From Mizuhopecten yessoensis (lineage: Eukaryota): a stretch of DNA of 64,000 nucleotides. The notes beneath the pieces were generated by a model, which worked only from the letters and a program-made list of their open reading frames with translations, made no database searches and had not been told where the DNA came from. Below, in pieces: positions 1,297-61,051 of the stretch. The position numbers were made by a program, and so were the translations under genes. The first letter of the stretch is position 1. Every line of letters begins with the position of its first letter. The DNA lies in contig NW_018479870.1 of assembly GCF_002113885.1 (NCBI RefSeq), positions 4,911 through 68,910 of the forward strand. The letters run 5' to 3'.

Positions 1297-1407
1297 AAAA
1301 CATGATTTTGAGCTGAAGACATCTATGGGGGTGTTCGTTTAGAACCCGAGTTACAACTCGACACCCGTGTTTCATTCAAGAACGACGGGAGTATAACACG
1401 CGAGTTC

Positions 1408-1602
1408 TTGATTTGATTGATTGATTGATGGGGCTTTACGTCCTTGTTCCGGTTATAACCGAGCCTAGGACAAAAAAAAAAAAAGGGGGGGGGGGGGTAT
1501 GGTTGCAATTCCGCCTTTTGAGTGTTGCCAAAAAGTTCTAAAATGGAGGATATGGGAACCTAACCTCCATTTTAGAACTTTTTGGCAACACTCAAAAGGC
1601 GG
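1408..1602 (-). mobile_element. Short retroposed (SINE-tail-like) insertion with a 13-bp target duplication, carrying a hairpin
   Basis: AACACGCGAGTTC is repeated directly at 1395-1407 and 1603-1615. The insert begins with a (TTGA)n tract that reads as an antisense SINE-like tail. Confidence 0.55.
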
Positions 1603-1604
1603 AA
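1509..1604. repeat. Perfect inverted repeat with 41-bp arms and a 14-nt loop
   Basis: TTCCGCCTTTTGAGTGTTGCCAAAAAGTTCTAAAATGGAGG followed by its exact reverse complement. Confidence 0.95.
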
Positions 1605-1667
1605 CACGCGAGTTCCGAAACTGGGTCAAGAGTATACTCCCCGATTTTACAGGGTCGACGAGAGTTA

Positions 1668-1688
1668 TGACGTCACAAACATGGCGGA
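1668..1688 (+). promoter_or_regulatory. CRE (TGACGTCA) plus YY1-like AAACATGGCG at the predicted start of the transposon accessory gene
   Basis: Motifs read directly. The ATG at 1681 is followed by the donor CAG|GTGAGG. Confidence 0.5.
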
Positions 1689-3287
1689 CGAAAGCAGGTG
1701 AGGTTAATGTGTTTTATTTAATCTCGAATATCGTCTTAAAAAATAAGTCAACATCAAATAATTTTATAAAAAATAACTTTAAATGATACAGAACGTATTA
1801 TCTGATGATAACTTGGCAGTGTTGATGCCTATGGTGCTCGGGGACTGGTTCTGATGAAGTATGCTACTTTGATGATCTTGTACTAAGGTAAGGTCATAAT
1901 GATAATGCTGATAATGTACATACATACGTGTTTCATTGTGAATGTGAATAATATCGCAACCAGAAAAAAATAAATCAATCGAGGTTGATGTTTTGCAGTT
2001 CAAGTCCAGGATATTGGCAACAAACTCGTCTAACATATAGTGATGGGACCACCTACCTAGTCAAACTGGACATGCCAACGATTCAACGTTTAGAGAATGG
2101 AGGTGGGAAGTCCAAAATAACTTTAATTTGGTATCATTTCTAGTATTAAACCATGTCGAGATTAATTTTAAGAAGGAGAAAGTACAAGAATTACATGAGT
2201 TTAATCTAAACATCCTTATTGACATCCAAGATGAAAGACCGAGATGATGAATATATTAAGTACGTTTTTTTGTGCATTAATTTAGATTATACACATGCAT
2301 ATCTGTAACAATTTACATGCACTAAATGTAGTTACAAAATGTGCTAAATATATAAAGCAAATCAGATCAATTTAGAAATCTGAATCTTGGAAATTATTTA
2401 TCTATGGGTTTTGCTAGTTGTCTATTCTATACTCTTCCCTTTAAAAACATGTTTGAAACATCTCATTTTCTCTTTTGCTTATTTTGTAGATACTCAACTT
2501 CTTGAAACAATCAGGGCTAATATAGAATCATCAAAATTGAAAAAAAACTCTTCAGCCACAGGTGGTGCATTGGCGTCGTCCTCCAACAACTACCCTCCAT
2601 CCGTCACAGGTGGTGCATTGGCGTCATCCTCCAACAACGACCCTCCATCCGTCACAGGTGGTGCATTGGCGTCATCCTCCAACAACGACCCTCCATCCGT
2701 CACAGGTGGTGCATTGGCGTCATCCTCCACTGAAGAAAATCTTCCAAAATTTTGGGGAAGACGAGAAACAGCTCTACTGTTTGACTTGCGATCAACTATG
2801 GAATCCGACTTTCATTCCATGAGAACACACAAAGAAAAAAATAAGTGAAAGCATGAATAAGAAGGGGTACAAATATACGCCTACACAATGTGAGAACAAG
2901 TTTAAGAGTTTGAAACGAGAATACAGGAACACTGTGGATCACAATTCAAAATCTGGAAACGACAAAAAGTCTTGTCCTTTTTTTTCCGAGTTTCAGGAGT
3001 TGTATGGCATGAACGCCTCCACAAGACCATCAGTGGCGATTAGCTCCAGCAGAGGCATGACTATGGAGGGCAATAGTACCGAGACTAACCAGACTAGTCA
3101 GACTCCAAGCAAGACGAGACGAGACAGGAAAAGGAAAGAGAGACCTGAATGGCTTGAAAATTTAGACACCAGGCAAGTAGAAAGACACAAAGACAAGATG
3201 GCAGCTATGGACAGGCTGATATCAGTTCTTGAAAAAGGGTTTTCCAAGGTGGGGATTATTTTTGGTCTCATTAGATGTATAGAGTAG
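1681..3287 (+). CDS. Harbinger accessory Myb/SANT-like (trihelix) DNA-binding protein, spliced, with a frameshift near 2835-2841
   Basis: Phase-consistent model: exon 1 1681-1697, exon 2 1999-2102, exon 3 from 2490 (MADESS..LENG|DTQLL..). Myb/SANT motif WGRRETALL...MNKKGYKYTPTQCENKFKSLKREY...CPFFSEFQELYG. The frame shifts at the A7 run and the middle conserved Trp is missing, suggesting a small deletion. Confidence 0.75.
2558..2729 (+). repeat. 48-bp coding tandem repeat, about 3.6 copies (TGGALASSSNNDPPSV)
   Basis: Units start at 2558, 2606, 2654 and 2702. Confidence 0.95.
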
Positions 3288-3720
3288 TACTAGTGAATGA
3301 AGCATATTATATAGTGGTGTTCGTCTTTAACTCCCTCCTCCAAGAAAAACATTAAATGTTGCTATAATATGATATGAGCTTATTCTGTACCATGGCGTCT
3401 GCCTGTCGTCCGTCAACTAAAAGAACTAATAGGCCGGAATGGCGAAGTAGATTTTGACTACTTGGCCTTTTTGTTTGCAATGCTGTTTGTCTTTAAATGG
3501 TGACAGTTGTACAAAGTTCAGTAAAATAACTTCTGTTTAAACACAGGTTTTGTTATCACGGTTTGTGTCCACAAGGAGATACCAACAATAATTTAAAGTT
3601 GCTCAAGATGCATTCAAATAGATTTCTTAGAATACATTTTACGTTTGCCAAATTTTATTATAAACATGTTTTCATTTTTTAGACATTTAAACATGAATGT
3701 TTAATGATTTTTTTTTTCAG

Positions 3721-4339
3721 AATCATCAGCCTGCCACAGACAATCCTCATGGAAGTTCTTAGGCATCTTAACATTACTGATCAGCTGTGTTTAGCTTCAA
3801 CAAGTAGAGGAATGAGAAGAAATATCCTGGGAACCTTCACCAATATAAATGTGTCTTGTAAACAGACACCTAGAAGTGTTCCAGACTTCCACTTCCTGAA
3901 CATTATATGTTCATTGACAAAACTTGTGATCAGAGCTAAAGCTAATACAACCATGCTCAGTCTGCTTTCTGCTCTGTACTCAGGGGCCCTATTTCAGTTA
4001 GAAATTTTGGAACTGATAGATGTAGGGTATTCTTTGCAGTCTCTCTACAATGTCATCATTGCTTTGCCAAATTTGCATTCCTTAGTTACACATGAAAGTA
4101 GGTCAGAACTCTCTGTGGAGTTTTTGGTAGAGTTGATGCAGAGGAAGAAAGGGCTACGGTATGTTAGTGGAAAAGTAACTACAAAGTGTCAAAGGGACGT
4201 TGAAAATTTGGCACAACTGTTGAACAGTAATGTGGGAAGGGTGACATTTGGTCACAGTATTATAGACAAAGTGCCACTTCAAATGTTGAAATGTGTACGA
4301 TACGCGTACAGTTTCCCAAATCCAAGTGGTCGTTATTGA
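3721..4339 (+). CDS. F-box plus LRR-like protein exon inside the Harbinger element
   Basis: IISLPQTILMEVLRHLNITDQLCLASTSRGMR matches the F-box consensus and is followed by LxxLxL repeats (LTKLVI, LEILEL, LPNLHSL). Strong acceptor (T)nCAG at 3720. Uninterrupted ORF to 4339. Confidence 0.75.
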
Positions 4340-4495
4340 AAGGAACACAATCAGTTTCAACTTCTCAAAAACTACATTAAAGAAATGTAATTGTTCAGTT
4401 TTCTTAATCATGAAAGAATTCATGTACATGCTGTCATTTTGTTTTCCATATGTCCATAATATGTTGTAATAAGTTTACACTAGCAGTCAGGTCAG

Positions 4496-4845
4496 ATGGG
4501 GCACCGTTTTAGTATTTATCTACGAAATGTGACATCACTAATTCAAATTAATGATATCAATGTATATTTATTGATATCATTAAATAATTATATCACTAAT
4601 TCAAATTGGTGATTTAACTTGATAGAATTAGTGATCACTAATTCATTTAATAATATCACATATCATATTATTGATATCACTAAATGCCCTGAATTGTTGC
4701 TATCACTAGTTTGACTAAGTGATATCAATAATTTCAATTAATAATATCTCAATAATTCTGGGCATTTAGTGATGTCATAAATTTATATTAATGATATCAA
4801 TAATGGAATCACACTTTGTAGACAAATACGAAAACAGTGCCCCAT
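4496..4845. mobile_element. MITE nested in the Harbinger element
   Basis: About 37-bp imperfect TIR ATGGGGCAC(C/T)GTTTT(A/C)GTATTT(A/G)TCTAC... with internal GATATCA/ATCACTAA repeats. Confidence 0.8.
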
Positions 4846-5108
4846 AATTATTTGTTCACACATTTTCTAAATATTATTGTTTGTATTATCATGTTTAATA
4901 GGTTTTATTCCATCATCAGTTGGTGACTTTTATTTTATATGTAATTGAAAAGTTATTTAAATCTGTGTTACCTGAGAGATACTCAAACGTTTTTATTTTG
5001 TTTTCCATTTAATAAAACAAGTTTGATTCATTTTACACTTTATCACATTGTCTTGTTTTCAAAAGCAGTGGCTAGTCTATGCAACCATGGCATGGTTTTC
5101 GAACACAG

Positions 5109-6328
5109 TTATCTGTTGGCATTGAGAAGCTGTACAATCTCATTTCTTTTCCGCACACCACGAGCATTATCCAAATACACAGGAGGATAGTTATTGACTA
5201 CTTGATTTCCGTCATAATTGTCCAAGTACTCGGACAGATCATCTTCATGTAATATACACATATTATGCAGGATACAACCGGACATAATGATTTCACAGGC
5301 ACTTTTCATGTCACGGCAGCTAAGATCTCTTAGGCGTCTGAATCGTTGTTTCATATGTCCTATTGAACGTTCTACTGTTTGACGTACTGATGACACCTTC
5401 TTGTTGAAATGCTTCTGTTGTGCACTCAGATTTCCAGTTTGTCTAAATGGCGTTATCATGACTTCTGATAAGGGATATGCACCATCTCCTGAAAGGCAAG
5501 GAAAAGGAAATTACTTATACTTCAAACATTGTCATATAGACTTTTTCTCAAAAATATGTGTAAATACATTACAGTACCTATTAAAAAATGTCCAGGGGCT
5601 ATCATTCCAGTTTGGAGACCATCAAAAAGAGGACTGTTCTTGTAAACTCTGGCATCGTGGACACTACCAGGCCACCCTACGTATGCGTCAATGATCAGCA
5701 TATTATGTGACACAACAACCTGTAGCTGGAGAGAAGGAAACCCTTTTCTGTCTATGTAACCAGAGTCCCCATTGGGAACACTTGACAGTCGGATGTGGGT
5801 CCCATCGATAAAACCAACGACTCCTGGTATTCCTGTACTGTTTTTAATTTCTTCTGCTGCTTCATCCTGTTCAGTCTGATCAGGCCAATGAATGTATTTC
5901 TGCATTTCGTTACATAACGCGAATGAAACTTCTCTCACACAACTAAAAACAGATGATTTTGATACATTAAATAGGCGTGATATTTCCCTCATACAATCTT
6001 GGTTTGCCATGTACCACAAAAATATCAGCAATTTGTGGTTAGGTTTCAAGGGATCCCTTCCACAAGGGCGGTCAGTGCTCTCAATGTGAGGAACAACTTC
6101 GTTTAGAAGAATGTCAAACGTATTACGAGTTATCCTGAAATCTCTTTTGAACTCTCTGTCATCAAATCTGTCCATCACGAGTTCAACGAACCCAGTTACC
6201 TTCGGAACAGCATTTGGGAATTTATGGTACGCTAAACAGTGTGTAAGATATTCCTCCTCGTCGTCGGAATCGTTGATAATCAGTTCACAACACACTATTG
6301 TCGGAATGACTGCTGTGTTTTCCTCCAT
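5109..6328 (-). CDS. PIF/Harbinger DDE transposase (HARBI1-like), two exons, apparently intact (about 376 aa)
   Basis: Exon 6328-5578, GT-AG intron 5577-5489, exon 5488-5109. Splicing restores LIGDGAYPL. Motifs FKRDFRITR, IDGTHI, GWPGSVHDARV, VERSIGHMKQRFRRL and CILHN are present. The start Met (MEENTAV) is inferred. Confidence 0.93.
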
Positions 6329-6543
6329 GTTGAGAACCCGACTGTTGTGATCTCTGCGTTTTTGACACGCTTGACTATTATTATATCTGCGCATGTCTGG
6401 ATTCAACCCTCGAGTTTCCGTCACGAACACCCCCTATTTATAGCAACCTATCAATAGCGTGGTTAGCGACGTAATTCAATACAGCCTGACGCGTATACAT
6501 GGAATACTGTAAACGATAAACGTAATAAACCAGCTTTAATACC

Positions 6544-8022
6544 ATGGAGTGTGACACACATACAGGTGAGAAAGTTTTCATGGTGTGTATATCATGTGAC
6601 AAGTTCCCCTTTGCCTGTGGAAATTGTCTTGAAGAGAAGCATGTAAAGCACGAAGTTCAGACATTGAGGAACGCCGCTCATTCTATCCTTCAGAATCTGG
6701 AAAAGGTAGAAACCGAGAATGTGCGGGTGTTTAAAGAGATCAAGTCGGATCTAGAGGGTCTCACCGAAATCAGAGAGGATCTGAAACAGGATGCTAATAA
6801 CGTAGATGATGAGATCGCGAAACGTGTTGATGTTATCAGAAGCAAAATCGACGAAGTCAACACGGAAGTAATACAGAAACACAAAACGGAAGTCGGTAAG
6901 AACGCGGAGTCCATTGACAGAACGGAGGAAGCTCTGAAAAAACAGGTGGCCCAAATAAAAACGTTCAAAAAGAAGGTAGCTCAGCTACAGAAGATGAACG
7001 ACTACGTGGACGTGATTGAGTCGGGAAGGGAGGTTAAGGTGCCGGATACCAACCGCATCCCTAGGCCGGACATACAAGCCCTAACATTTAGCCCCGGGAC
7101 TGTCAGGGACGGAGAACTTAAACGAATGTTTGGAGGTATTAACACCATGTCGTCTGACTTCGTTGGTTCGATCGAAAGAGAATCAAATATCAAAGTAACA
7201 CCAGTAACATCCTTCAAACTTCCTAAAGATGATGGCATAGATACTATGTTTTGTTCTAAGCCAGGACATTGCTGGTTAAAATGTAAGGATAAAAACACCG
7301 TTAAACTTTTAAACACCTCTGGAGAAACTTTGCAAGCTGTCAAGCTAGAAACGCAGACAAATGGATTTACTGTCACTTCAAATAACAGGTTACTGTTCTG
7401 TTGTGCAACTCCGCAATGTGTCAAGAAAATGAACCTTCCAAACGGAGAGATCACAGAGAAGTTCAGCACTAGTCCACTGACACCCAACTACATATGTACA
7501 GGTCCGTCTGGGGACATATACGTGACGCTGTTTGACAAGAATGATTACAAATTAAAAAAAGACAGTACCCGTGTGTTGATCCAATACAACAGTAGGGGAC
7601 TAGAAAAGGCTCGGTGTCAGACAGATGTCTTTGGCGAATGTCTCTTTGTTGTACCAATGGACGTCTTTGTGAACAATAAGGGCACCCGAGTGGCAGTAAT
7701 TAACGAGATTCGTGTCAATCGCAGCGAGTTAGTTGTTCTTGACCAGGACCTATCTCCTCTCTTTGTCTATACAGGACCCAGCGTGTTGACAGGCAGATCA
7801 CTGTCAGGGTTTAAGATTAATGGTGCTACGTTTGATACAAGAGACAATATTTTGGTTGCTGAAGAGAATAGTCAAACTATCCAGTTGTTGAGTCCATCTT
7901 GTGAGCCCCTTAAGGTCCTGAGGGCCATGGAAGCCTCACCATGGACCTTGTCCTTGCATGGGAATGAGGTTTGGGTAGGGTATGATGAAGGAGAAGTAGA
8001 TGTCTTCAGGTATTCTTACTAA
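6544..8022 (+). CDS. RING-less TRIM-like protein (B-box, coiled coil, NHL/beta-propeller), copy 1, intact, 492 aa
   Basis: B-box CxxH..CxxC..CxxC..HxxH, heptad-rich helical region, propeller blades (GFTVTSNNRLLFC, PNYICTGPSGDIYV, FDTRDNILVAE, PWTLSLHGNEVWVG). Confidence 0.9.
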   Translation: MECDTHTGEKVFMVCISCDKFPFACGNCLEEKHVKHEVQTLRNAAHSILQNLEKVETENVRVFKEIKSDLEGLTEIREDLKQDANNVDDEIAKRVDVIRSKIDEVNTEVIQKHKTEVGKNAESIDRTEEALKKQVAQIKTFKKKVAQLQKMNDYVDVIESGREVKVPDTNRIPRPDIQALTFSPGTVRDGELKRMFGGINTMSSDFVGSIERESNIKVTPVTSFKLPKDDGIDTMFCSKPGHCWLKCKDKNTVKLLNTSGETLQAVKLETQTNGFTVTSNNRLLFCCATPQCVKKMNLPNGEITEKFSTSPLTPNYICTGPSGDIYVTLFDKNDYKLKKDSTRVLIQYNSRGLEKARCQTDVFGECLFVVPMDVFVNNKGTRVAVINEIRVNRSELVVLDQDLSPLFVYTGPSVLTGRSLSGFKINGATFDTRDNILVAEENSQTIQLLSPSCEPLKVLRAMEASPWTLSLHGNEVWVGYDEGEVDVFRYSY

Positions 8023-11474: not shown

Positions 11475-13028
11475 ATGGAGTGTGCCACACATACAGGTGA
11501 GAAAGTGTTCGTGGTGTGTAAATCATGTGACAGGATCCCCTTTGTCTGTGGAGTTTGCCTTGAAGAGGAGCATGCAGAGCACAAACTACAGACATTGAGG
11601 AACGCCGCTCAGTCTATCCGACAGAATCTGGAACAGGTAGAAACCGAGAATGGTCAGGTGTTTAAAGAAATCAAATCGGATCTAGATGGTCTAACCGAAA
11701 TCAGAGAGGATCTGAAACAGGATGCTTCTAACATAGATGATGAGATAGCGAAACGTGCTGATATTATCAGAAGTAAAATCGACGAAGTCAACACGGAAGT
11801 AATACAGAAACACATAACGGAACTCGGTAAGAACGCGGAGTCCATTGACAGAACGAAGGAAACTCTGAAACAACAGGTGTCCCAAATAGACACGTTCAAG
11901 ATGAAGGTAGCTTAGCTACAAAAGATGACCGACTACGTAGACGTTATTAAGTTGGGAAGGGATGTGGAGGTGCCGGATACCAACCGCGTCCCCAGACCGG
12001 ACATACAAGTCCTAATATTCATTCCCGGGGGTATCAGGGAGGGAGAACTGAAACGATTGTTTGGAGGTATTAAAGGGGCATTTGATAACGGTAACAATGA
12101 CGCTACTACGGTCACATGTGATGACAGGGCAGAGGGGAATGACGATAAAACCAACATGTCTGACTTTGTTGGCTCGATTAAAAGAGAAGCATGCATCAAA
12201 CTAACACCAATTGCCTCTTTTAATCACTCTAAACATGATGGTATACATGCTATGTTTTGTCCTGGATCAGGAACTGGCTTGTTTAAATTTGAGGGTAAAA
12301 ACAGTGTCAAACTTTGCAACAGATCCGGAAATATTAAAGCAGCTATCAATCTAGGAACTAAGACTGAAGGATTTACTGTCACTTCAGATAACAGGCTACT
12401 ATTCTGTTGTACAAGTCAGCAGTGTATCAAGGAGATGGAGCTGCCTAATGGCGATATTACAGAGACGTTCAGCACTAGTCCACTGACACCTAGCTATATA
12501 TGTACAGGTCCGTCTGGGGACATATATGTGACAATGTACGACGAGCATGATTATGACGTAACAGACGACAGTACCCGTGTGTTGGTCCGGTACGACAGTC
12601 AGGGGCGCAACAAAACCCAGTGTCAGGTTGATGGTAATGGTAGAAACATCTTTGTTGTACCATGTAAAGTCTGTGTGAACAGAAGTGGCACCCAAATAGC
12701 GGTTATTAACCACGTAAATGAAAGACGCAGTGAACTAGTTGTACTTGACAAGTACCTATCTCCTATATTGATTTATACAGGACCCAGCGTGTTGACCGGG
12801 GACGCCCTAGCAGGGTATGTTCTCTCTTGTGTTGTATTTGATACAAGAGACAATATTTGGATAGCTGAATGTTACAGCAAAACTGTGAAGTTACTGAGTC
12901 CAACCTGTGAGCCACTTCAGGTTCTGCTGACCATGGAAACTTCACCATGGTCCTTGTCCTTGCACGGGGATGAGGTTTGGGTCGGAGATGGCTAGGGAAA
13001 AGTACAGATCTTAAGGTATTCTTACTAA
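11475..13028 (+). pseudogene. TRIM-like copy 3, near-identical to copy 10, with two nonsense mutations
   Basis: TAG at 11913-11915 (CAG in copy 10) and TAG at 12993-12995 (GAG in copy 10). Confidence 0.9.
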
Positions 13029-15059: not shown

Positions 15060-15650
15060 AGGGACATAGTCAGAACACAACGGTGACAAGGTGAGAACAC
15101 TACGGTGACAGGGTGAGAACACCATAGTGACAAGGTGAGAACACGGCGGTGACAGGGTGATAACAACACAGTGTGAGGGTGAGAAAACATCACGTGACAG
15201 AATGAAAACATCACGTGACATGGTGAGAACACCACACTGACAGGGTGAGAACACAACAGTGACAGAGTGAGAACAGCAAAGTGGAAGGGTGAGAACATGA
15301 CAGTGACAGGGTGAGAACACCATAGTGACAGAGTAAGAACAGCAAGGTGACAGGGTGGGAACACCACAGTGACAGGGTGAGAACACGACGATGACAGGGT
15401 AATAACACGACAACAAAAGAGTGAACACGACAGTGACAGAGTGAGAACAAGACAGTGACAGGGTGAGAACACGACAGTGACAGGGTGAGAACACGACGAT
15501 ATCAGTGTGAGACCAACACAGTGACAGAGTGAGAACACGACAGTGACAGGTAATAACACGACAATGCCAGGGTGAGAACATGATGGTGACAGAGTGAAAA
15601 CACTACGGTGACAGGGTGATAACACCACAGTGACAGAGTGAGACACGACG
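15060..15650. repeat. 22-bp minisatellite (GTGACAGGGTGAGAACACGACG), medium array
   Basis: Tandem degenerate units. Same left flank as the arrays at about 41466 and 54160. Confidence 0.95.
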
Positions 15651-18620: not shown

Positions 18621-19630
18621 TTTTTTTTAGCTCACCTGGTCCGAAGGACCATGGTGAGCTTATGCCATACCGCAGCGTCCGTCGTCCGTCGTCCGCCCGT
18701 CCATCAACTTTTCCTTTAAAACGCTACTAGTCCTGAACAGCCGAGTAGACTTTGACTAAATTTGGTCTGGAGCATTCTTAGGCCAAGGGGACTCAATTTT
18801 GTATATATGGTGGGTGTGGCCCTCCTGGGGGCAAAAGGGCCGGGGCCCAATAGGGGAAATAGAGGTTAACCCTTCAAAATCCTTCTTCTACCCTAGGGAT
18901 TAAGGGATTTTATCCTAATTTAGTCTGGAGCATCTCGGGCCAGGGAACTCAATTTTGTATAAATGGTGGGTGTGGCGCCCCATGGGGCAGATGGGCGGGG
19001 TCGAATAGGGGAAATAGGTAAAACCTTCAAAATCCTTCTCCTACCGTAGGGATTAAGGTATTTTATCCTAATTTAGTCTGGAGTATCCTTGGGCCAAGTG
19101 GACTCAATTTTGTATAAACCGTGGGTTTGGCCCCCCAAGGGCCTGAGGGGCTGGGCCCAATAGGGGAACATAGCAAATTATTCTTTAAAATCCTTCTACT
19201 TCTGTAGGAATGACAGGATTTGGTCCATATTTGGTGTTGAGCATCCTTGGTCTAAGAGAAACCAATTTTGTATAAACGGTGGGTCTGGCCCCCTTGGGGG
19301 CTGAGGGGCGGGGCTCAATATGGGAAATATAGCAAATTCTTAAAAATCCGTCTTCTTCTGTAGGAATGACAGGATTTATTTCATATTTAGTCTGAAACAT
19401 CCCTGGGTGAAGGGGTACCAATTGTATAAACCAGGGGCCTGAGGGGCGGGGCCCAATAGGGGAAACATAGCAAATTATTCTTTAAAATCCTTCTTCTTCT
19501 GTAGGAATGAAAAGATTTTGTCCATATTTTCTGAAATTTCATATGTACTTACAGCACCTACCATGGAGTGCTATATTTTTACTTCATACCAATTATTTTT
19601 AACATATTCAGGTGAGCGATACAGGCCCTA
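18621..19630 (+). mobile_element. Helentron-associated non-autonomous element (HINE) with internal ~155-bp tandem repeats
   Basis: T-run then AGCTCACCTG..GGTGAGCT stem, (GTCC/GTC)n microsatellite, central repeats, 3' CAGGTGAGCGATACAGGCCC. Confidence 0.85.
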
Positions 19631-21354: not shown

Positions 21355-21615
21355 TAGTGTTGTGACCTGTTAAAGTTTCTGGCAGACCTACAAATATGGC
21401 TTCGACCAAAGTTAAAATACGTTATTATGACCTCCCGGTTTCCCTCCAAGACTTAAAATCGCAAACAAACGGTGCCCGCGAGTAAACTACAACTACACCC
21501 ATGCGCACACGATGGCGCGCAGTCCACAGGTCGCGTCACTGTATTTCCTGGGCACGGTAATTTGTGTGACACCGGAATACGAACCAGGCACGTGCTGTTT
21601 AGAAGTCTAATGAAA

Positions 21616-22552
21616 ATGGAGTGTGTTTACCACAAAGATGATACTGTCATAATGGTATGTACTCACTGTGACAAGTATCCATTTGTGTGTGCTATTTGTG
21701 TGGAGGAAGATCATGCTGAACACAAACTCGCGTCATTGAGATCTGCCGCACAGTCAATCCGACAAGAGTTGGAGCAGGCACAGTCAAACAATTTACATGT
21801 GTTTGAGGAAATCAAGTCTGATCTGGACAATCTCGCCAAAATCAGAGAGAATCTGCAACAGGGAGCACATCTTGTGGAAAATCAAATGGTGAAACGTCAC
21901 AATATTATGAAAAGTGAAGTCGACACTGTGAAAAGTGAAGTGCATTATAAACATAAAATGGAGCTTGGTAAGAACATGGAAGCCATCGGCAAAACGGAGC
22001 AAGCTCTGAAGCAACAATTTCCCAAATTGCCACATTCCAGAGGAAGGTGGTTCAGCTTAAAAACATGAACGATTATGTAGACATGATCGTAACAGGTAGA
22101 AATGTGGAGGTCCCACAAAGCAGACGCATCCCCAGGCTGGACATACATGTCCTGGTGTTCCTCCCCGGGGCTGTCAGGGATGGAGAACTTGAACGAATGT
22201 TTGGGAGTATTAAAGGGGCATCTGATCATGCCAATAACAATGAGAATAAAAGGGACAAGTCATCCGACTTTTTTGGTTTGATCGAAAGGAAATCAAAAAT
22301 CAAAGTTACGCCAGTTACATCATTTAAACTTTCAAAACATGTTGGTGTAGATAATCTAAAATGCCAGGATCAAAACTGTGTTAAACTTTCCAAGATACGA
22401 GAGACAATATGCATTTACTGAGTCAATCGTGCGAGCCTTTGAAAGTCCTGCTCACCATGAACACTACACCATGGGCCATGACTATACAGGGAAATGAGGT
22501 TTGGATTGGAGACGAGAAAGGAAAAGTACTGATCTTCAGGTATTCTTACTAA
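21616..22552 (+). pseudogene. TRIM-like copy 5 (copy 11 type) with a frameshift and a large propeller deletion
   Basis: 1-nt deletion near 22020. Most of the propeller is deleted at about 22393. Confidence 0.9.
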
Positions 22553-24343: not shown

Positions 24344-25372
24344 TTTTTTTTAGCTCACCTGGTCCGAAGGACCATGGTGAGCTTATGCCATACCGCAGCG
24401 TCCGGCGTCCGTCGTCCGTCGTCCGCCCGTCCATCAACTTTTCCTTTAAAAACTACTAGTCCTGAACAGCCAAGTAGATTTTTACTAAATTTGGTCTGGA
24501 GCATTCTTAGGTCAAGGGGACTCAATTTTGTATATATGGTGGGTGTGGCCCTCCTGGGGGCAGAGGGGCGGGGCCCAAAAGGGGAAATAGAGGTTAATCC
24601 TTGAAAATCCTTCTTCTACTCTAGGGATTAAGGGATTTTATCCTAATTTAGTCCGGAGCATCCTTGGGCCAGGGGACTCAATTTTGTATAAATGGTGGGT
24701 GTGGCGCCCCTTGGGGCAGATGGGCGTGGCCGAATAAGGGAAATAGGTAAAACCTTCAAAATCCTTCTCCTACCGTAGGGATTAAGGGATATCATCCTAA
24801 TTTAGTCTGGAGTATCCTTGGGCCAAGTGGACTCAATTTGTATAAACCGTGGGTTTGGCCCCCCAAGGGCCTGAGGGGCTTGACCCAATAGGAGAACATA
24901 GCAAATTATTCTTTAAAATCCTTCTACTTCTGTAGGAATGATAGGATTTGGTCCATATTTGGTGTTGAGCATCCTTGATCTAAGGGAAACCAATTTTGTA
25001 TAAACGGTGGGTCTGGCCCCCTTGGGGGCTGAGGGGCGGGGCCCAATATGGGAAATATAGCAAATTCTTAAAAATCCGTCTTCTTCTGTAGGAATGACAG
25101 GATTTATTCCATATTTAGTCTGAAGCATCCTTGGGTGAAGGGATACCAATTTGTATAAACCAGGGGCCTGAGGGGCGGGGCCCAATAGGGGAAACATAGC
25201 AAATTATTCTTTAAAATCCTTCTTCTTCTGTCGGAATGAAAAGATTTGGTCCATATTTTCTGAAATTTCATATGTACTTACACCACCTACCAATGAGTGC
25301 TATATTTTTACTTCATACCAATTATTTTAAACATATTCAGGTGAGCGATACAGGCCCTCTGGGCCTTTTGTT
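24344..25372 (+). mobile_element. HINE element, duplicate of 18621-19630, with an intact 3' hairpin GGCCCTCTGGGCC
   Basis: Same structure and flanks as the first copy, so it was copied by segmental duplication. Confidence 0.85.
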
Positions 25373-49656: not shown

Positions 49657-51210
49657 ATGGAGTGTGCCACACATACAGGTGAGAAAGTCTTCATGGTGTG
49701 CAAATCATGTGACAGGATCCCCTTTGTCTGTGGAGTTTGCATTGAAGAGGAGCATGCAGAGCACAAACTACAGACATTGAGGAACGCCGCTCAGTCTATC
49801 CGGCAGAATCTGGAACAGGTAGAAACCGAGAATGGTCAGGTGTTTAAAGAGATCAAATCGGATCTAGATGGTCTCACCGAAATCAGAGAGGATCTGAAAC
49901 AGGATGCTTCTAACATAGATGATGAGATAGCGAAACGTGCTGATATTATCAGAAGCAAAATCGACGAAGTCAACACGGAAGTAATACAGAAACACAAAAC
50001 GGAAGTCGGTAAGAACGCGGAGTCCATTGACAGAACGGAGGAAACTCTGAAACAACAGTTGTCCCAAATAGGCACGTTCAAGACGAAGGTAGCTCAGCTA
50101 CAAAAGATGAACGACTACGTAGACGTTATTAAGTTGGGAAGGGATGTGGAGGTGCCGGATACCAACCGCGTCCCCAGACCGGACATACAAGTCCGAACAT
50201 GCATTCCCGGGGGTATCAGGGAGGGAGAACTGAAACGATTGTATGCAGATATTAAAGGGGCATTTGATAACGGTAACAATGACGCTACTACGGTCACAGG
50301 TGATGATAGGGCAGAGAGGAATGACGATAAAACCAACATGTCTGACTTTGTTGGCTCAATTAAAAGAGAAGCATTCATCAAAGTAACACCAATTGCATCT
50401 TTTAATCACTCTAAACATGATGGTATAGATGCTATGTTTTGTCCTGGATCAGGAACTGGCTTGTTTAAATTTGAGGGTAAAAACAGTGTCAAACTTTGCA
50501 ACAGATCCGGAAATATTAAAGCAGCTATCAATCTAGGAACTAAGACTGAAGGATTTACTGTCACTTCAGATAACAGGCTACTATTCTGTTGTACAAGTCA
50601 GCAATGTATCAAGGAGATGGAGCGGCCTAATGGCGATATTACAGAGACGTTCAGCACTAGTCCACTGACACCTAGCTATATATGTACAGGTCCGTCTGGG
50701 GACATATATGTGACAATGTACGACGAGCATGATTATGACGTAACAGACGACAGTACCCGTGTGTTGGTCCGGTACGACAGTCAGGGGCGCAACAAAACCC
50801 AGTGTCAGGTTGATGGTAATGGTAGAAACATCTTTGTTGTACCATGTAAAGTCTGTGTGAACAGAAGTGGCACCCAAATAGCGGTTATTAACCACGTAAA
50901 TGAAAGACGCAGTGAACTAGTTGTACTTGACAAGTACCTATCTCCTATATTGATTTATACAGGACCCAGCGTGTTGACCGGGGACGCCCTAGCAGGGTAT
51001 ATTCTCTATGGTGTTGTATTTGACACAAGAGACAATATTTGGGTAGCTGAATGTTACAGCAAAACTGTGCAGTTACTGAGTCCAACCGGCGAGCCACTTC
51101 AGGTCCTGTTGACCATGGAAACTTCACCATGGTCCTTGTCCATGCACCGGGATGAGGTTTGGGTCGGGGATGGCGAGGGAAAAGTACAGATCTTCAGGTA
51201 TTCTTACTAA
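49657..51210 (+). CDS. RING-less TRIM-like B-box/coiled-coil/beta-propeller protein, copy 10, intact, 517 aa
   Basis: Full ORF with B-box and propeller motifs and an acidic linker insertion (DNGNNDATTVTGDDRAERNDD). Confidence 0.9.
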   Translation: MECATHTGEKVFMVCKSCDRIPFVCGVCIEEEHAEHKLQTLRNAAQSIRQNLEQVETENGQVFKEIKSDLDGLTEIREDLKQDASNIDDEIAKRADIIRSKIDEVNTEVIQKHKTEVGKNAESIDRTEETLKQQLSQIGTFKTKVAQLQKMNDYVDVIKLGRDVEVPDTNRVPRPDIQVRTCIPGGIREGELKRLYADIKGAFDNGNNDATTVTGDDRAERNDDKTNMSDFVGSIKREAFIKVTPIASFNHSKHDGIDAMFCPGSGTGLFKFEGKNSVKLCNRSGNIKAAINLGTKTEGFTVTSDNRLLFCCTSQQCIKEMERPNGDITETFSTSPLTPSYICTGPSGDIYVTMYDEHDYDVTDDSTRVLVRYDSQGRNKTQCQVDGNGRNIFVVPCKVCVNRSGTQIAVINHVNERRSELVVLDKYLSPILIYTGPSVLTGDALAGYILYGVVFDTRDNIWVAECYSKTVQLLSPTGEPLQVLLTMETSPWSLSMHRDEVWVGDGEGKVQIFRYSY

Positions 51211-54159: not shown

Positions 54160-57100
54160 AGGGACATAGTCAGAACACAACGGTGACAGGGTGAGAACAC
54201 GACGATGACAGGGTGTGAACACGACGGTGACAAGGTGTGAACACGACGGTGACAAGGTGTGAACACGACGGTGACAAGGTGTGAACACGACGATGACAGG
54301 GTGTGAACACGACGGTGACAGGTGTGAACACCACAATGACAGGGTGTGAACACCACAGTGACAGGATGAGATCACCACAGTGACGGAGTGAGAGCACGAC
54401 GGTGACAGAGTGAGAACACGACGGTGACAGGGTGAGACCACCACAGTGACAGGATGACCACACCACAGTGACAGGGTGAGAACACCAGAGTGACAGAGTG
54501 AGAACACAACAGTGACAGAGTGAGAGCACGACGGTGACATGGTGAGAACACCACAGTGACAGGGCGAGAACACATCAGTGACAGAGTGAGAGCACGACGG
54601 TGACATGGTGAGAACACGACGGTGACAGAGTGAGAACACGACGGTGACATGGTGAGAACACCACGGTGACAGGATGACCACACCACAGTGATAGGGTGAG
54701 AACACCAGATGACAGAGTGAGAACACAACAGTGACAGAGTGAGAGCACGACGGTGACAGAGTGAGAACACCATAATGACAGGGTGAGAACACGACGGTGA
54801 CAGGGTGAGAACACCATAGTGACAGGTTGAGAACACAACGGTGATACGGTGAGAACATCGCAGTGATATGATGAGAACACCACAGTGACAGAGTGAGAAC
54901 ACGATGGTGACAGGGATTAGAACACCAGTGACAGGATGAGAACACAACAGTGACAGGGTGAGAACACGACGGTGACAGGGTGAGAGCATGACGGTAACAG
55001 GGTGAGACCACCACAGTGACTGGGTGACCACACGACGGTTACAGGGTGAGAGCACGACGGTGACAGGGTGAGAACACCATAATGACAGGGTGAGAACACG
55101 ACGGTGACAGGGTGAGAACACCATAGTGACAGGTTGAGAACACGATGGTGACAGGGTGAGAACACCACAGTGACAGAGTGAGAACACCACATTGACAGGA
55201 TGAGACCACCACAGTGAAAGGGTGAGAATACGACGGTGATAGGATGAGATTACCACAGTGACAGGATGAGAACACCACAGTGACAGGGTGAGATCACGAC
55301 GGTGACAGGGTAATAACACAACAACAAAAGAGTGAATACGACAGTGACAGAGTGAGGACACTAGATTGACAGAGTGAGAACACGACAGTTACAGGATGAA
55401 AACACGACGGTTATAGGATTAGAACACGACGGTGACAGAGTGAGACCACCACAGTGACAGGATGACCACACCACAGTGACAGGGTGAGAACACCACAGTG
55501 ACAGAGTGAGAACACAACAGTGACAGAGTGAGAAAACGACGGTGACATGATGAGACCACCACAATGACAGGGTGAGAACACCACAGTGACAGGGTGAGAA
55601 CAGGACGGTGACAGGGTGAGCCCACCACAGTGACAGGATGAGAACACCACGGTGACAGAGTGAGAACACGACGGTGACAGGGTGAAACCACCACAGTGAC
55701 AGGATGAGAACACCACAGTGACAGGATGTGATTACTACAGTGACAGAGTGAGAGCACCACAGTGACAGAGTGAGAACACCATAGTGACAGGGTGAGAACA
55801 CGACAGTGACAGACTGAGAACACGACGGTGACAGGGTGAGAACACGACGGTGACAGACTGAGAACACGACGGTGACAGGGTGAGAACACTATAGTGACAG
55901 GTTGAGAACACAACAGTGACAGGGTGAGAACACGACGGTGACAGGGTGAGAACACAACAGTGACAGGGTGAGAACACGACGGTGACAGAGTGAGAGCACG
56001 ACGATAACAGGGTGAGACCACCACAGTGACAGGGTGAGAACACGACGATGACAGGGTGAGAACACGACGGTGACAGGGTGAGAACACCATAATGACAGGG
56101 TGAGAATACGACGGTGACAGGGTGAGAACACCATAGTGACAGGTTGAGAACACAACGGTGATAGGGTGAGAACATCGCAGTGACATGATGAGAACGCCAC
56201 AGTGACAGAGTGAGAACACGATGGTGACAGGGATTAGAACACCAGTGACGGGATGAGAACACAACAGTGACAGGGTGAGAACACGACGGTGACAGAGTGA
56301 GAACACGACGGTGACAGGGAGAGAACACCATAGTGACAGGTTGAGAACACCACGGTGATAGGGTGAGAACATCGCGGTGACATGATGAGAACGCCACAGT
56401 GACAGAGTGAGAACACCATAGTGACAGGGTGAGAATACGACGGTGACAGGGTGAGAACACCATAGTGACAGGTTGAGAACACGACGGTGATAGGGTGAGA
56501 ACACCGCAGTGACATAATGAGAACACCACAATGACAGAGTGAGAACACCACATTGACAGGATGAGAACACCACAGTGAAAGGGTGAGAATACGACGATGA
56601 TAGGATGAGATTACCACAGTGACAGGATGAGAACACCACAGTGACAGGGGGAGATCACGACGGTGACAGGGTAATAACACGACAACAAAAGAGTGAACAC
56701 GACAGTGACAGAGTGAGGACACTAGATTGACAGAGTGAGAACACGACAGTTACAGGATGAAAACACGACGGTTATAGGATTAGAACACGACGGTGACATA
56801 GTGAGAACACGACGATGACAGGGTGAGAACACTACGGTGACAGAGTGAGAACACGACGGTGACAGAGTGAGAACACCACAGTGACAGGATGAGAACACGA
56901 CGGTGACGGAGTAAGACCACGACAATAGCTGAGTGGGAACACCACATTGACAGAGTGAGAACACCACAGCGACAAAGTGAGAACACAACGCGACGGTGAC
57001 AGGGTGAGAACACGACGGTGACAGAGCGAGAACATGACGATGACGGAGTAAGACCACGACAATGGCGGGGTGAAAACACCACAGTGACAAGAGTGAGAAC

Positions 57101-57785
57101 ACGATGGTGACAAGAGTGAGACACGACGGTGACAGAGTGAGACACGACGATGACAGAGTGAGAGCAAGACGATGACGGAGTAAGACCACGACCACGGCGG
57201 AGTGAGAACACCACAGTGACAGAGTGAGAACATCACAGTGACAAGAGTGAGAACACCACAGTGGCAGGATAAGAACTAGCCGGTGACAGAGCGAGAACAC
57301 GACGACGACTGAGTAAGACTATGACAATGGCGGAGTGAGAACATCACAGTGACAAGAGTGAGAACACAATGGTGACAAGAGTAAGACACGACGTCGACAG
57401 AGTGAGAGTACAACGGTGACAGAGTGAGAGTACAACGATAAGGGAGTAAGACCACGACAACGGCGGAGTGAGAGCATCACAGTAACAAGAGTGAGAACAC
57501 GACGGTGACAAGAGTCAGACACGACGGTGACAGAGTGAGAGCACGACGGGTGAGAACGCGACGGTGACAGCGTGAGAACACGACGGTGACAGAGTGAAAA
57601 CACGACGCGACGATGACAGAGTGAGAACATGACAAGACGGTGAAAGAGTGAGAATAAGACGGTGGCAGAGTGAGAACACGACGCGACGGTGACAGGGTGA
57701 GAACACGACGGTGACAGAGTGAGAACGCGACGGTGACAGCGTGAGAACACGACGGTGACAGAGTGAAAACACGACGGTGACAGAG
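54160..57785. repeat. 22-bp minisatellite, about 3.6-kb array with a ~1.3-1.4-kb higher-order duplication
   Basis: The diagnostic variant block GTGAGGACACTAGATTGACAG occurs at about 55355 and 56715. Confidence 0.97.
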
Positions 57786-59279: not shown

Positions 59280-59530
59280 GTGTTGTGACCTATTTAAGTT
59301 TCTGGCAGACCTACATATATGGCTTCGACCAAAGTTAAAATACGTTATTATGACCTCTCGGTTTCCCTCCAAGACTTAAAATCGCAAACAAACGGTGCCC
59401 GCGAGTAAACTTCAACTACGCCCATGCGCACACGGCGGCGCGCATTCGCGTCACTGTATTTCCTTGGCACGGTAATTTGTGTGACACCGGAAAACGAACC
59501 AGGCACGTGCTGTTTAGAAGTCTAATGAAA

Positions 59531-61051
59531 ATGGAGTGCGTTTACCACAAAGATGAGACTGTCATAATGGTATGTACTCACTGTGACAAGTATCCATTTG
59601 TGTGTGCTATTTGTGTGGAGGAAGATCATGCTGAACACAGACTCGCTTCATTGAGATCTGCCGCACAGTCAATCCGACAAGAGTTGGAGCAGGCACAGTC
59701 AAACAATTTACATGTGTTTGAGGAAATCAAGTCTGATCTGGACAATCTCGCCAAAATCAGAGAGAATCTGCAACAGGGAGCACATCTCGTGGAAAATCAA
59801 ATGGTGAAACGTCAAAATATTATGAAAAGTGAAGTCGACACTGTGAAAAACGAAGTGCATTATAAACATCAAATGGAGCTTGGTAAGAACATGGAAGCCA
59901 TCGACAAAACAGAACAAGCTCTGAAGCAACAGTTTTCCCAGATTGCCACATTCCAGAGGAAGGTGGTTCAGCTTAAAAACATGAACGATTATGTAGACAT
60001 GATCGTAACAGGCAGAAATGTGGAGGTCCCACAAAGCAGCAGACGCATCCCCAGGCTGGACATACATGCCCTGGTGTTCCTCCCCGGGGCTGTCAGGGAC
60101 GGAGAACTTGAACGAATGTTTGGGAGTATTAAAGGGGCATCTGATCATGCCAATAACAATGAGAATAAAAGGGACAAGTCATCTGACTTTTTTGGTTTGA
60201 TCGAAAGGAAATCAAAAATCAAAGTAACGCCAGTTACATCATTTAAACTTTCAAAACATGTTGGTGTAGATAATATGTTTTGTCCTAAATCAAAAGTTTG
60301 CTGGCTAAAATGCCAGGATAAAAACAGTGTTAAACTTTCCAACAGGTCTGGAGAAATTAAACAAGCTATAAACCTGGGAACTAGGTCGGATGGATTTACT
60401 GTAAGTGCAGATAATAAGCTTCTGTTCTGTTGTACACTACAGAAATGTATCAAGGAGATCGCTCTTCCAAATGGTGAGATTACAGAGAAGCTCAGCACTT
60501 GTCCTCTCACACCAAACCGTATATGTACAGATCCATCTGGGGACATATATGTAACACTATGCGACGAAGATGACTATGAAGTAACAGATGACAGTACCCG
60601 TGTGTTGGTCCGGTACGACCGGTGGGGGGAAGAGGCGGCTCGTTGTCAGGCTGATGGATATGGAGGAAGCCTCTTTGTTGTACCTGAGGATGTCTGTGTG
60701 AACAACACGGGCACCCGAGTAGCGGTCATTAACCGTGTAAGTGACAGACGCAGAGAACTAGTTGTTCTCGACGAAGACCTATCGCCTGTGTTAATCTATA
60801 CAGGACCCAGGGTGTTGACTGGGGACTCCCTGGCAGGGTATAGTCTCTATGGTGTGGTATTTGATACCAGAGACAATATTTTGGTTGCTGAATGTTATAG
60901 CAAAACTGTGCAGTTACTAAGTCCATCTTGCGAGCCATTGAAAGTCCTGCTCACCATGAACACTACACCATGGGCCATGACTATACAGGGAAATGAGGTT
61001 TGGATTGGAGACGAGAAAGGAAAAGTACAGATCTTCAGGTATTCTTACTAA
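59531..61051 (+). CDS. RING-less TRIM-like B-box/coiled-coil/beta-propeller protein, copy 11, intact (start MECVYH; alternative ATG at 59525)
   Basis: Full ORF with B-box CVYH..CTHC..CAIC..HAEH and propeller motifs, ending FRYSY. Confidence 0.9.
   Translation: MECVYHKDETVIMVCTHCDKYPFVCAICVEEDHAEHRLASLRSAAQSIRQELEQAQSNNLHVFEEIKSDLDNLAKIRENLQQGAHLVENQMVKRQNIMKSEVDTVKNEVHYKHQMELGKNMEAIDKTEQALKQQFSQIATFQRKVVQLKNMNDYVDMIVTGRNVEVPQSSRRIPRLDIHALVFLPGAVRDGELERMFGSIKGASDHANNNENKRDKSSDFFGLIERKSKIKVTPVTSFKLSKHVGVDNMFCPKSKVCWLKCQDKNSVKLSNRSGEIKQAINLGTRSDGFTVSADNKLLFCCTLQKCIKEIALPNGEITEKLSTCPLTPNRICTDPSGDIYVTLCDEDDYEVTDDSTRVLVRYDRWGEEAARCQADGYGGSLFVVPEDVCVNNTGTRVAVINRVSDRRRELVVLDEDLSPVLIYTGPRVLTGDSLAGYSLYGVVFDTRDNILVAECYSKTVQLLSPSCEPLKVLLTMNTTPWAMTIQGNEVWIGDEKGKVQIFRYSY

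Follow-up and report, generated by a model that had tools for sequence, protein, structure and literature searches.

Harbinger is a textbook two-protein DNA transposon. The locus described here raises the question in which protein an F-box/LRR reading frame next to the Myb-like gene of such an element is read. The window, that is, the whole stretch analysed, covers 64,000 nucleotides of Mizuhopecten yessoensis DNA (contig NEDP02076543.1 from position 4911), and its sequence does not contain any N.

Positions 1327-6434 of the window are one 5.1-kb copy of a Harbinger/PIF DNA transposon of M. yessoensis with 12-bp TIRs at its ends (Table 1). A Myb/SANT-like gene on the forward strand faces a convergent DDE_Tnp_4 transposase gene on the reverse strand. 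The transposase is of the DDE_Tnp_4 / Plant_tran type, with Pfam matches in both exons, and the second gene encodes a Myb/SANT-like (trihelix) protein matching Myb_DNA-bind_4 (E=1.4e-10), though broken here. The short TIRs are perfect and have only two matches in the whole window, both of them the element ends, compared with 0.11 expected. The classification of the element as a Harbinger in an earlier note on this DNA is borne out by the TIRs together with the Pfam matches to Myb_DNA-bind_4, F-box and DDE_Tnp_4, and the F-box/LRR ORF is located between the two TIRs as that note had placed it. Subterminal similarity (AACCCGAG) is seen in the left TIR region, and the left end sequence is also present in two further copies, L002 and L011. 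L011 keeps both TIR ends, with unmatched flanks TAC/ATT, and L002 is without the right end. The TAT/TAT flanks of the window copy are a weak indication of a target-site duplication, with a chance of 1 in 64 of arising by accident, and they differ from the usual TWA. The nested MITE-like insertion contains a 44-nt inverted repeat (1509-1552/1561-1604), and its borders are ambiguous within the repeated AACACGCGAGTTC. The two transposase exons, the splice sites of which were checked, join into 376 open codons.

Table 1. Features of the Harbinger copy in the window
Feature	Position	Strand	Remarks
Candidate 3-bp target-site duplication TAT	1324-1326, partner 6435-6437	.	Directly flanks both TIRs
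Left TIR GGGGGTGTTCGT	1327-1338	+	Exact reverse complement of 6423-6434
Nested palindromic MITE-like insertion	1395-1602	.	Private to the window copy; absent from L002 and L011
Exon 1 ATGGCGGACGAAAGCAG, ATG + 14 nt	1681-1697	+	Ends in phase 2; donor GTGAGG
Exon 2	1999-2102	+	Encodes conserved N-terminal motif YWQ..L.Y.DG....V.LD.PTI.RL..G
Exon 3 to GC donor	2490-3172	+	Ser/Gly-rich repeats, Myb/SANT-like trihelix domain, basic stretch (KTRRDRKRKERPEWL)
48-nt coding tandem repeat	2557-2729	+	3.6 copies here; three units more in L002
Deletion break point	2833/2834	+	8 nt missing, GTACTTTG in the other two copies (three-copy alignment)
Dual-use segment	3173-3248	+	Intron in fusion isoform; coding in Myb-only isoforms P0015, P0016
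Intron common to spliced isoforms	3249-3720	+	GT donor AAG/GTGGGG; acceptor T10CAG
Terminal coding exon	3721-4339, stop 4337-4339	+	F-box ~3725-3820, ~5 LRRs (predicted), C-terminal motif; needs a phase-2 donor
Inverted and direct repeat-rich block	4497-4853	.	Between the convergent genes; common to all three copies
Transposase exon 2, DDE_Tnp_4 C-terminal half	5109-5488, stop 5109-5111	-	Pfam E=1e-11
Transposase exon 1, DDE_Tnp_4 N-terminal half	5578-6328, ATG 6328-6326	-	Pfam E=1.4e-12
Right TIR	6423-6434	-	Pairs with 1327-1338

Four coding exons make up the Myb-like partner gene, ending with the F-box/LRR exon at 3721-4339. The coordinates and phases given in the earlier note for exon 1 (1681-1697), for the donor after 2102 and for the three acceptors (before 1999, 2490 and 3721) are correct. 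For a paralogous copy, the RefSeq model P0002 likewise consists of exons of 17 and 104 nt followed by exon 3, and a 159-aa gene call at 1681-2848 of the window agrees with this exon 1-2-3 structure. Exons 1 and 2 show zero substitutions among the three M. yessoensis copies, and homologues of exon 2 are present in the relatives L005, L006 and L010. The tandem repeat of exon 3 differs in length by 144 nt between the window copy and L002. The Myb_DNA-bind_4 match covers 2850-3248. However, the 8-nt deletion, across which P0002 reads THKVLWKKISES, shifts the frame within the Myb domain and leads to a stop at 2846-2848 (…THKEKNK-stop), leaving the C-terminal half of the domain in another frame. Thus, the Myb isoform proposed earlier is right in its exon joins, as the P0002 model indicates, but its frame is closed in this copy. 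The Myb exon is broken in all three M. yessoensis copies, each at a different place. An autonomous element would have both the transposase and the Myb gene intact; the window copy is defective, with the Myb domain broken by the deletion and the transposase and the F-box exon still open.

The annotated isoforms, which are RefSeq computational models (X1 and X3 of LOC110441422, together with P0015, P0016 and P0017), define the exon structure at the 3' end of exon 3. In X1, exon 3 ends at ACCAG/GCAAGT after 3172, and this phase-2 GC donor joins in frame to the acceptor at 3721 (…ENLDTR/IISLPQ…). In X3, the GT donor after 3248 joins to 3721 out of frame (…EKGFSK/NHQPATDNPHGSS-stop), giving a Myb-only protein, and the P0017 model of a third locus has the identical join. 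A 144-aa read-through product is also on record for LOC110441422; the read-through ORF past 3248 stops at 3285-3287. When read as coding, the dual-use segment between the two donors gives a C-terminal helix (QVERHKDKMAAMDRLISVLEKGFSK) that is conserved in six lineages (alignment A2) and identical in the three copies. The common intron diverges more between the copies than the exons do. The earlier note had proposed a Myb-F-box-LRR fusion through a join from 3248 to 3683. The kind of product was right; that join keeps the frame on paper but occurs in no model, and the fusion junction is that of X1, from 3172 to 3721. The GC donor after 3172 does not appear in that account.

The Myb-like gene of this Harbinger probably yields, by alternative splicing, either a Myb-F-box/LRR fusion or a Myb-only partner. 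Splicing from the weak GC donor after 3172 to 3721 would place the Myb DNA-binding domain, the basic stretch and the F-box/LRR module in one polypeptide. Read-through, or use of the GT donor after 3248 with an out-of-frame splice to 3721, would give an ordinary Myb-only partner with the conserved helix. The GC donor may have been kept because a consensus GT donor in this phase would put TAA or TGA in the read-through frame.

The terminal exon is of the F-box/LRR type. Its ORF matches the Pfam F-box model PF00646 above the threshold (E=3.2e-5, 24.1 bits vs. a cut-off of 20.5), in agreement with the earlier reading, and F-box models are matched by 8 of the 10 family members (best E=6.2e-10). The LRRs, which had also been claimed, were recovered differently: the Pfam LRR models gave no match to the window protein itself, but the family profile and the AF2 model show the repeats, and one family member matches LRR_At5g56370 at 1.8e-5. 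Comparison of the family profile with the PDB gave TIR1 as the first match (E=3e-6 over residues 8-232), followed by COI1, FBXL2, SKP2 and KDM2B. The AF2 model built with the 10-sequence alignment A1 (pLDDT 85.7) consists of a three-helix F-box (helices at residues 6-13, 18-25 and 29-36) and five subsequent beta-alpha repeats. A single-sequence AF2 model (pLDDT 38) was unusable, and only the 10-sequence alignment gave a model. Foldseek comparisons showed that the best match is COI1-ASK1, an F-box/LRR protein in complex, and that LRR proteins dominate the matches, with modest TM-scores of 0.4-0.5. The three-helix F-box fold is thus found with both AF2 and Foldseek, and in the family profile and the predicted structure the LRRs come straight after the F-box, as in FBXL proteins; the LRR fold of this exon is a prediction from that profile and that model. 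The exon ends with the motif LLN...G.VTFGH.IID..P...L...R.AYS.P.P.G, of which the family-specific TFGH.IID…R.AYS part has no Pfam match. No start codon within the exon is conserved.

We infer that the fusion could serve as an SCF adaptor. The Myb domain would bind the element ends, the F-box would recruit SKP1-CUL1, and the surface formed by the LRRs and the C-terminal part would present a ubiquitylation target at the element. The candidate target may be the complex of transposase and Myb protein, for self-regulation or turnover, or a host chromatin or silencing factor. An F-box directly followed by LRRs is also found in KDM2A/KDM2B (FBXL11/FBXL10), SKP2, FBXL2, TIR1 and COI1, and KDM2A/B place a DNA-binding domain upstream of the F-box/LRR part. 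Beyond the generic signal, no specific sequence relation is detectable between these proteins and the scallop module, which has ~5 repeats and a family-specific motif and is transposon-encoded. The likeness to KDM2A/B, with a DNA-binding domain preceding F-box and LRR, and the matches of the profile's F-box region to KDM2B chains would also suit a non-degradative SKP1-binding or docking scaffold that tethers a host complex or aids the transposition complex. Such scaffolds have precedents in KDM2B within PRC1.1 and Ctf13 within the CBF3 kinetochore complex, and the most conserved part of the module is the C-terminal motif rather than the F-box, which fits a fixed docking partner. However, most members retain the consensus residues of the F-box (LP, E[IV]L, I/L, D, L), and these data do not distinguish degradative from non-degradative use. 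We regard the scaffold role as unlikely.

The order of the genes, the splice junction and its phase are conserved across distant lineages. The family is small: with the exons searched separately, an exhaustive phmmer search of 1.84 billion representatives returned 9 relatives at E<1e-3. Word-indexed searches of protein collections, using the F-box ORF or either half of P0001 as the query, recovered P0001 and one paralog only, and the family came to light through phmmer. The scan of viral_contigs gave no match, and the metagenome scan added one 1.1-kb fragment. The order Myb, F-box/LRR, DDE_Tnp_4 is found in six relatives from Pecten and metagenome/SRA contigs (L004, L005, L006, L007, L008 and L013), showing that the ORF is conserved in the element family, as had been expected; L009 and L010 end before any transposase could appear. 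The identity of the F-box module to that of the window is 37% in L005, 30% in Pecten, 26% in L006 and 23% in L008, and it broadly declines together with that of the transposase (58-62%, 52-57%, 46-60% and about 37% in the same order), which reaches down to about 37% across the relatives. In the window family and in four related lineages, the Myb exon ends with a phase-2 donor. It is a GC donor in the window family, Pecten maximus (EKR/CLSDLP), L005 (EQR/SILDLP) and L006 (EER/YVHIMDLP), and a GT donor in L010 (PEWLER/LPQEVL). The junction sites are homologous across the lineages, at the R/Q site (alignment A2). L007 and L008, which are the most distant of the lineages, gave no convincing donor/acceptor pair.

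Within M. yessoensis, the F-box exon of L011 has a stop at codon 6 and an 18-nt deletion in the conserved motif, and differs from the window exon by 15 changes (12 nonsynonymous and 3 synonymous) plus the stop; that of L002 differs by 3 changes. L004 carries a late stop. The decay in L011 and L004 indicates that the copies within a species decay neutrally, and selection is argued from deep conservation only. The within-species substitution pattern of the F-box exon is uninformative for selection. The gene order in six relatives and the phase-2 junction in four indicate that the F-box/LRR module is an old, selected part of this Harbinger clade. The k-mer searches for TIRs in L003-L008 gave noise only. 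The two Pecten copies are 98.9% identical over 7.5 kb; a likeness to the scallop TIR is seen at their right end and not at their left, so that the comparison did not delimit the Pecten element.

The conserved phase also bears on the headline of the earlier note, according to which the 17-nt first exon is shared by two proteins: exon 1 would splice straight to 3721, skipping exons 2 and 3, and give a stand-alone 211-aa F-box/LRR protein (MADESR-IISLPQ…) besides a separate Myb protein. The join from 1697 to 3721 is in frame and reads through to the stop of the terminal exon. Exon 1 ends in phase 2 in L005 and L006 as well, so the join is in frame there too, and the four X1 transcripts share one CDS, their 5' structures not being visible. 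However, no annotated isoform or database protein has this join, and a collection of 5.8 billion proteins, searched over a length range that covered 211 aa, contains no such protein. A phase match occurs by accident in one of three cases. Furthermore, exons 1-3 of Pecten maximus end in phase 1 and the F-box acceptor needs phase 2; the join is therefore impossible there, and the F-box exon can be reached from the Myb exon only. Direct splicing of exon 1 is thus improbable, though it may occur as a minor isoform. A further reading, in which the ORF stems from a captured piece of a host gene or from faulty annotation, has no role for the element and serves mainly as 3' UTR of the Myb-only X3, hardly deserves credence. 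In its favour, X3 and P0017 include the exon in another frame, as a short tail followed by UTR, and copies decay neutrally within the species. Against it, an open frame of ~200 codons with an F-box signature and an invariant C-terminal motif is kept at 23-37% identity with the transposases diverged in parallel, the splice phase is conserved, and no cellular homologue outside a Harbinger context turned up in the exhaustive search.

Canonical PIF/Harbinger elements such as zebrafish Harbinger3_DR share with the scallop element the DDE_Tnp_4/Plant_tran transposase, the Myb_DNA-bind_4 partner and the short TIRs. However, only two ORFs are described for them in the literature searched, whereas the scallop partner gene adds a terminal F-box/LRR exon that is reached, unlike in canonical Harbinger, by alternative 5' splice-site use. 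According to the summary in PMC9392472, the canonical partner is responsible for transposase import as well as for binding to the ends of the element. Fusions of Caenorhabditis F-box with Mariner-HTH and of zebrafish F-box with CxC7 of KDZ elements, validated by exon-spanning reads (PMC12062965), likewise carry, on a single polypeptide, an F-box and a binding domain of transposon type for nucleic acid or protein. There, host genes acquired a TE domain, whereas the scallop fusion lies inside TIR-bounded multi-copy elements beside a transposase; PMC12062965 does not mention Harbinger, Myb or molluscs. No published account of a Harbinger F-box was found in the literature searched. The F-box/LRR proteins of nudiviruses and giant viruses match in structure only (TM 0.4-0.5), and stand alone rather than being fused. 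Polerovirus P0 and nanovirus Clink are F-box proteins, and these, like the F-box-like proteins of poxviruses and baculoviruses, are likewise examples of a selfish element with its own ligase adaptor. One gene of the Drosophila P element yields either transposase or repressor, depending on how it is spliced. The same kind of splice choice there combines a shared DNA-binding part with different C-termini, in a different superfamily and with no ubiquitin-ligase module. By analogy with the P element, a regulatory role of the scallop fusion may be conjectured.

Chromatin regulators have arisen more than once by domestication of Harbinger Myb partners (NAIF1, MSANTD genes, plant ALP2 and HDP2). It is possible, and we put it forward tentatively, that an animal Harbinger clade has long carried its own ubiquitin-ligase substrate receptor, alternatively spliced onto an end-binding Myb protein, and brings the SCF ligase to its own DNA, where the ligase could dispose of a host factor involved in silencing or chromatin, or else clear away the transposition complex. 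Transposons may then hijack the host ubiquitin system as many viruses do, at their own DNA, and the fusion is a concrete, testable candidate for counter-silencing or self-regulation. The weak GC splice donor after 3172 would be a case of dual coding, retained to give two proteins, and the fusion would explain a set of "uncharacterized" Myb plus F-box proteins in scallop RefSeq. If true, this would make the module the first E3 adaptor described from an animal DNA transposon, as far as the literature searched shows.

The first 14,339 bases of the window match contig NEDP02076543.1 of the Mizuhopecten yessoensis (Yesso scallop) assembly GCA_002113885.2, from its position 4911, without a difference. 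Positions 1327-6434 of the window are a 5.1-kb element of the PIF/Harbinger superfamily, with convergent genes. The sequence of its terminal inverted repeats (TIRs) has two matches in the whole window against 0.11 expected, and TAT adjoins both TIRs. The two transposase exons together give 376 open codons. A further ORF lies inside the TIRs, between the Myb-like gene and the transposase. A palindromic MITE-like insertion at 1395-1602, in the left subterminal region, is private to the window copy, contains an A13/G13 run and is flanked by the 13-nt direct repeat AACACGCGAGTTC. The region around the element is AT-rich (GC ~0.36) and carries clustered TRIM-like (B-box/NHL) genes that lack introns. 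The 34 nt at 1109-1142 share 91% identity with the beginning of the TRIM-like gene at 6544, so the Harbinger sits between this gene and the apparent start of another copy. Elsewhere in the window, a 22-nt satellite (unit AGAACACGACAGTGACAGGGTG) forms arrays at 54172-57783 (~164 copies) and 15072-15649 (~26 copies), accounting for the anomaly at 54-58 kb (GC 0.50, AT-skew 0.46) and explaining why so many minus-strand 'ORFs' overlap there. A tandem unit of ~157 nt is common to arrays at 18759-19431 and 24487-25160 (4.3 copies each, ~5 kb apart), and these arrays may delimit some larger repeat or element.

Features of the Harbinger element and its surroundings (window positions)
Feature	Position	Strand	Remarks
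Left TIR	1327-1338		GGGGGTGTTCGT
Right TIR	6423-6434		exact reverse complement of left TIR
Myb_DNA-bind_4 gene		+	E=1.4e-10
F-box ORF	3721-4339		
Transposase, two exons	6328-5578, 5488-5109	-	DDE_Tnp_4/Plant_tran, E=1.4e-12, 1e-11
TRIM-like ORFs	6544-8022, 11925-12995, 21472-22068, 49657-51210, 59477-61051		intronless, B-box/coiled-coil/NHL

The intervening ORF matches the Pfam F-box model with 24.1 bits against a curated cut-off of 20.5 (E=3.2e-5); the Pfam LRR models have no match to the window protein by itself. A phmmer search, run exhaustively against 1.84 billion representatives, returned nine more proteins at E<1e-3, eight of which are true relatives. Alignment of ten sequences of the module showed that the F-box consensus LP.E[VI]L..I..YL...D is retained and that all eight invariant columns fall within the C-terminal motif LLN...GK[VI]TFGH.[IV]ID..P...L...R.AYS.P.P.G. 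F-box models are matched by eight of the ten members (best E=6e-10), and the family profile matches the solved structures of TIR1 (E=3e-6), COI1, FBXL2, SKP2 and KDM2B. The AlphaFold2 model built with this alignment (pLDDT 85.7, pTM 0.83) has three F-box helices followed by five beta-alpha repeats and a cap, and Foldseek ranked COI1-ASK1 top, followed by LRR proteins. Sequence and predicted fold thus support the F-box/LRR identity that the earlier note gave to this ORF, with SKP1 binding putative.

The splice sites and phases of the Myb-like gene are as that note described: exons of 17 nt and 104 nt and a third from 2490 are arranged as in the RefSeq model for a paralogous M. yessoensis copy. 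In the window copy, the frame from exons 1-2 ends at a stop at 2846-2848, and a different frame holds the C-terminal half of the Myb domain. Two other M. yessoensis copies, L002 and L011, have 8 additional bases at 2833/2834, GTACTTTG, which give the reading THKVLWKKISES, indicating a frameshifting deletion in the window copy. Their own Myb exons are also broken, at other sites. The Myb protein is dead in all three copies, and the window copy does not qualify as an autonomous element. A 48-nt coding repeat in the Myb exon, GGALASSSNNDPPSVT (window 2557-2729; L002 10989-11132), differs in copy number between copies, L002 having three units more than the window.

The isoform evidence consists of RefSeq models at LOC110441422. 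Isoform X1, represented by four transcripts, is a 312-aa protein with the sequence MNKKGY…ENLDTR|IISLPQ… and joins the donor ACCAG|GCAAGT after 3172 (GC-AG intron, phase 2) to the acceptor at 3721; the frameshift upstream is the sole reason for its start at M2853. Isoform X3 (145 aa), reading …EKGFSK|NHQPATDNPHGSS*, joins a GT donor after 3248 to 3721 out of frame, as in the X3-type join of a third locus, LOC110462422. The read-through product of 144 aa is on record too. The Myb-F-box-LRR fusion proposed earlier through 3248 to 3683 is not modelled, RefSeq joining 3248 to 3721 instead, and the proposed product of 1697 joined to 3721 is absent from the protein collection in searches run exon by exon that covered its length. 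The shared first exon is unsupported as a mechanism, whereas the underlying idea of an F-box/LRR adaptor encoded by the element itself is supported.

Comparison with other lineages showed the same arrangement. In Pecten maximus, two Myb+F-box proteins (388 and 404 aa) are annotated, followed at one locus by a convergent Harbinger transposase, with the junction EKR|CLSDLP at a phase-2 donor AG|GCAAG. The order Myb ORF, F-box ORF, DDE_Tnp_4 recurs in four metagenome/SRA contigs (L005, L006, L007, L008); two more (L009, L010) are truncated. In a distant member (L013, 1076-2864), the transposase shares the strand of the F-box ORF rather than being convergent, and the LRR region is longer. The phase-2 GC donor is also found in L005 (EQR|SILDLP) and L006 (EER|YVHIMDLP), and in L010 a phase-2 donor of the GT type lies four codons earlier. 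A second alignment showed that the junctions of the window family, Pecten, L005, L006 and L010 are homologous, and that the read-through frame just 3' of them encodes a conserved helix, MH.DKM..MERF..VLEK, which is replaced in the fusion isoform. No start codon in the F-box exon is conserved among the relatives compared, which means that translation must enter it from an exon upstream. Because exons 1-3 of Pecten all end in phase 1, only the Myb exon can feed the F-box exon in frame there; exon 1 of L005 and L006 matches the window in having a phase-2 end. Identity to the window declines broadly in parallel for the F-box module (37, 30, 26, 23%) and the transposase (~60, 55, 50, 37%), a pattern that fits long co-inheritance.

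In phase 2, intron bases 2-4 form the codon that follows AG|G. With a consensus GTAAGT or GTGAGT, this codon would be TAA or TGA, terminating the Myb-only protein; the actual donors GCAAGT and, in L010, GTATGA read CAA and TAT. Judging from these codons, the unusual GC donor may be a cost of dual coding, and such a weak site would permit both isoforms.

L002 keeps the F-box ORF, with 2 nonsynonymous and 1 synonymous changes, and has a broken transposase. The full-length L011 carries Q6->stop and an 18-nt deletion of RYAYSF in its F-box exon (12 nonsynonymous vs 3 synonymous changes). Of two Pecten copies, L004 has a late stop and L003 is intact. These changes represent the usual neutral decay of old insertions and have no bearing on function in active elements. 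The two Pecten copies share 7.5 kb at 98.9% identity (L004 9506-17006, L003 8547-16031); the right end (reverse complement GGTTGTATTCG…) is similar to the scallop TIR, and the shared left boundary (TGCTCCCCGTTTTACC…) does not form an inverted pair with it. Both copies may have lost part of the left end, or duplication of the unit may have happened in some other way. Across the three dead M. yessoensis copies, 0 substitutions occur in the 197 nt of exons 1 and 2 plus the C-terminal-helix segment (1681-1697, 1999-2102, 3173-3248), beside introns (1698-1998, 2103-2489) differing by 4-6% with many indels. Such invariance is unexpected under neutral decay after insertion; the copies may derive from diverged master elements, or gene conversion may have acted.

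The nearest published cases found are host F-box genes with captured transposon domains (PMC12062965); viral F-box proteins are alike by analogy. No report of a Harbinger-encoded F-box was found in the full-text literature searched, whose coverage, that of Repbase reports included, is incomplete.

F-box proteins bind SKP1 and are the substrate receptors of SCF. The Harbinger Myb partner binds both the transposase and the termini of the element, and is responsible for nuclear import of the transposase (summarized in PMC9392472). Beyond the demonstrated architecture, isoform models and conservation, the fusion would retain the DNA binding and the basic stretch, lose the C-terminal helix and gain an SCF-docking and substrate-binding module. 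By analogy with KDM2B, a non-degradative scaffold role of the F-box/LRR module is possible. As an SCF adaptor, the fusion would recruit a ubiquitin ligase to the element, where its candidate targets would be a host factor or the complex of transposase and Myb protein.
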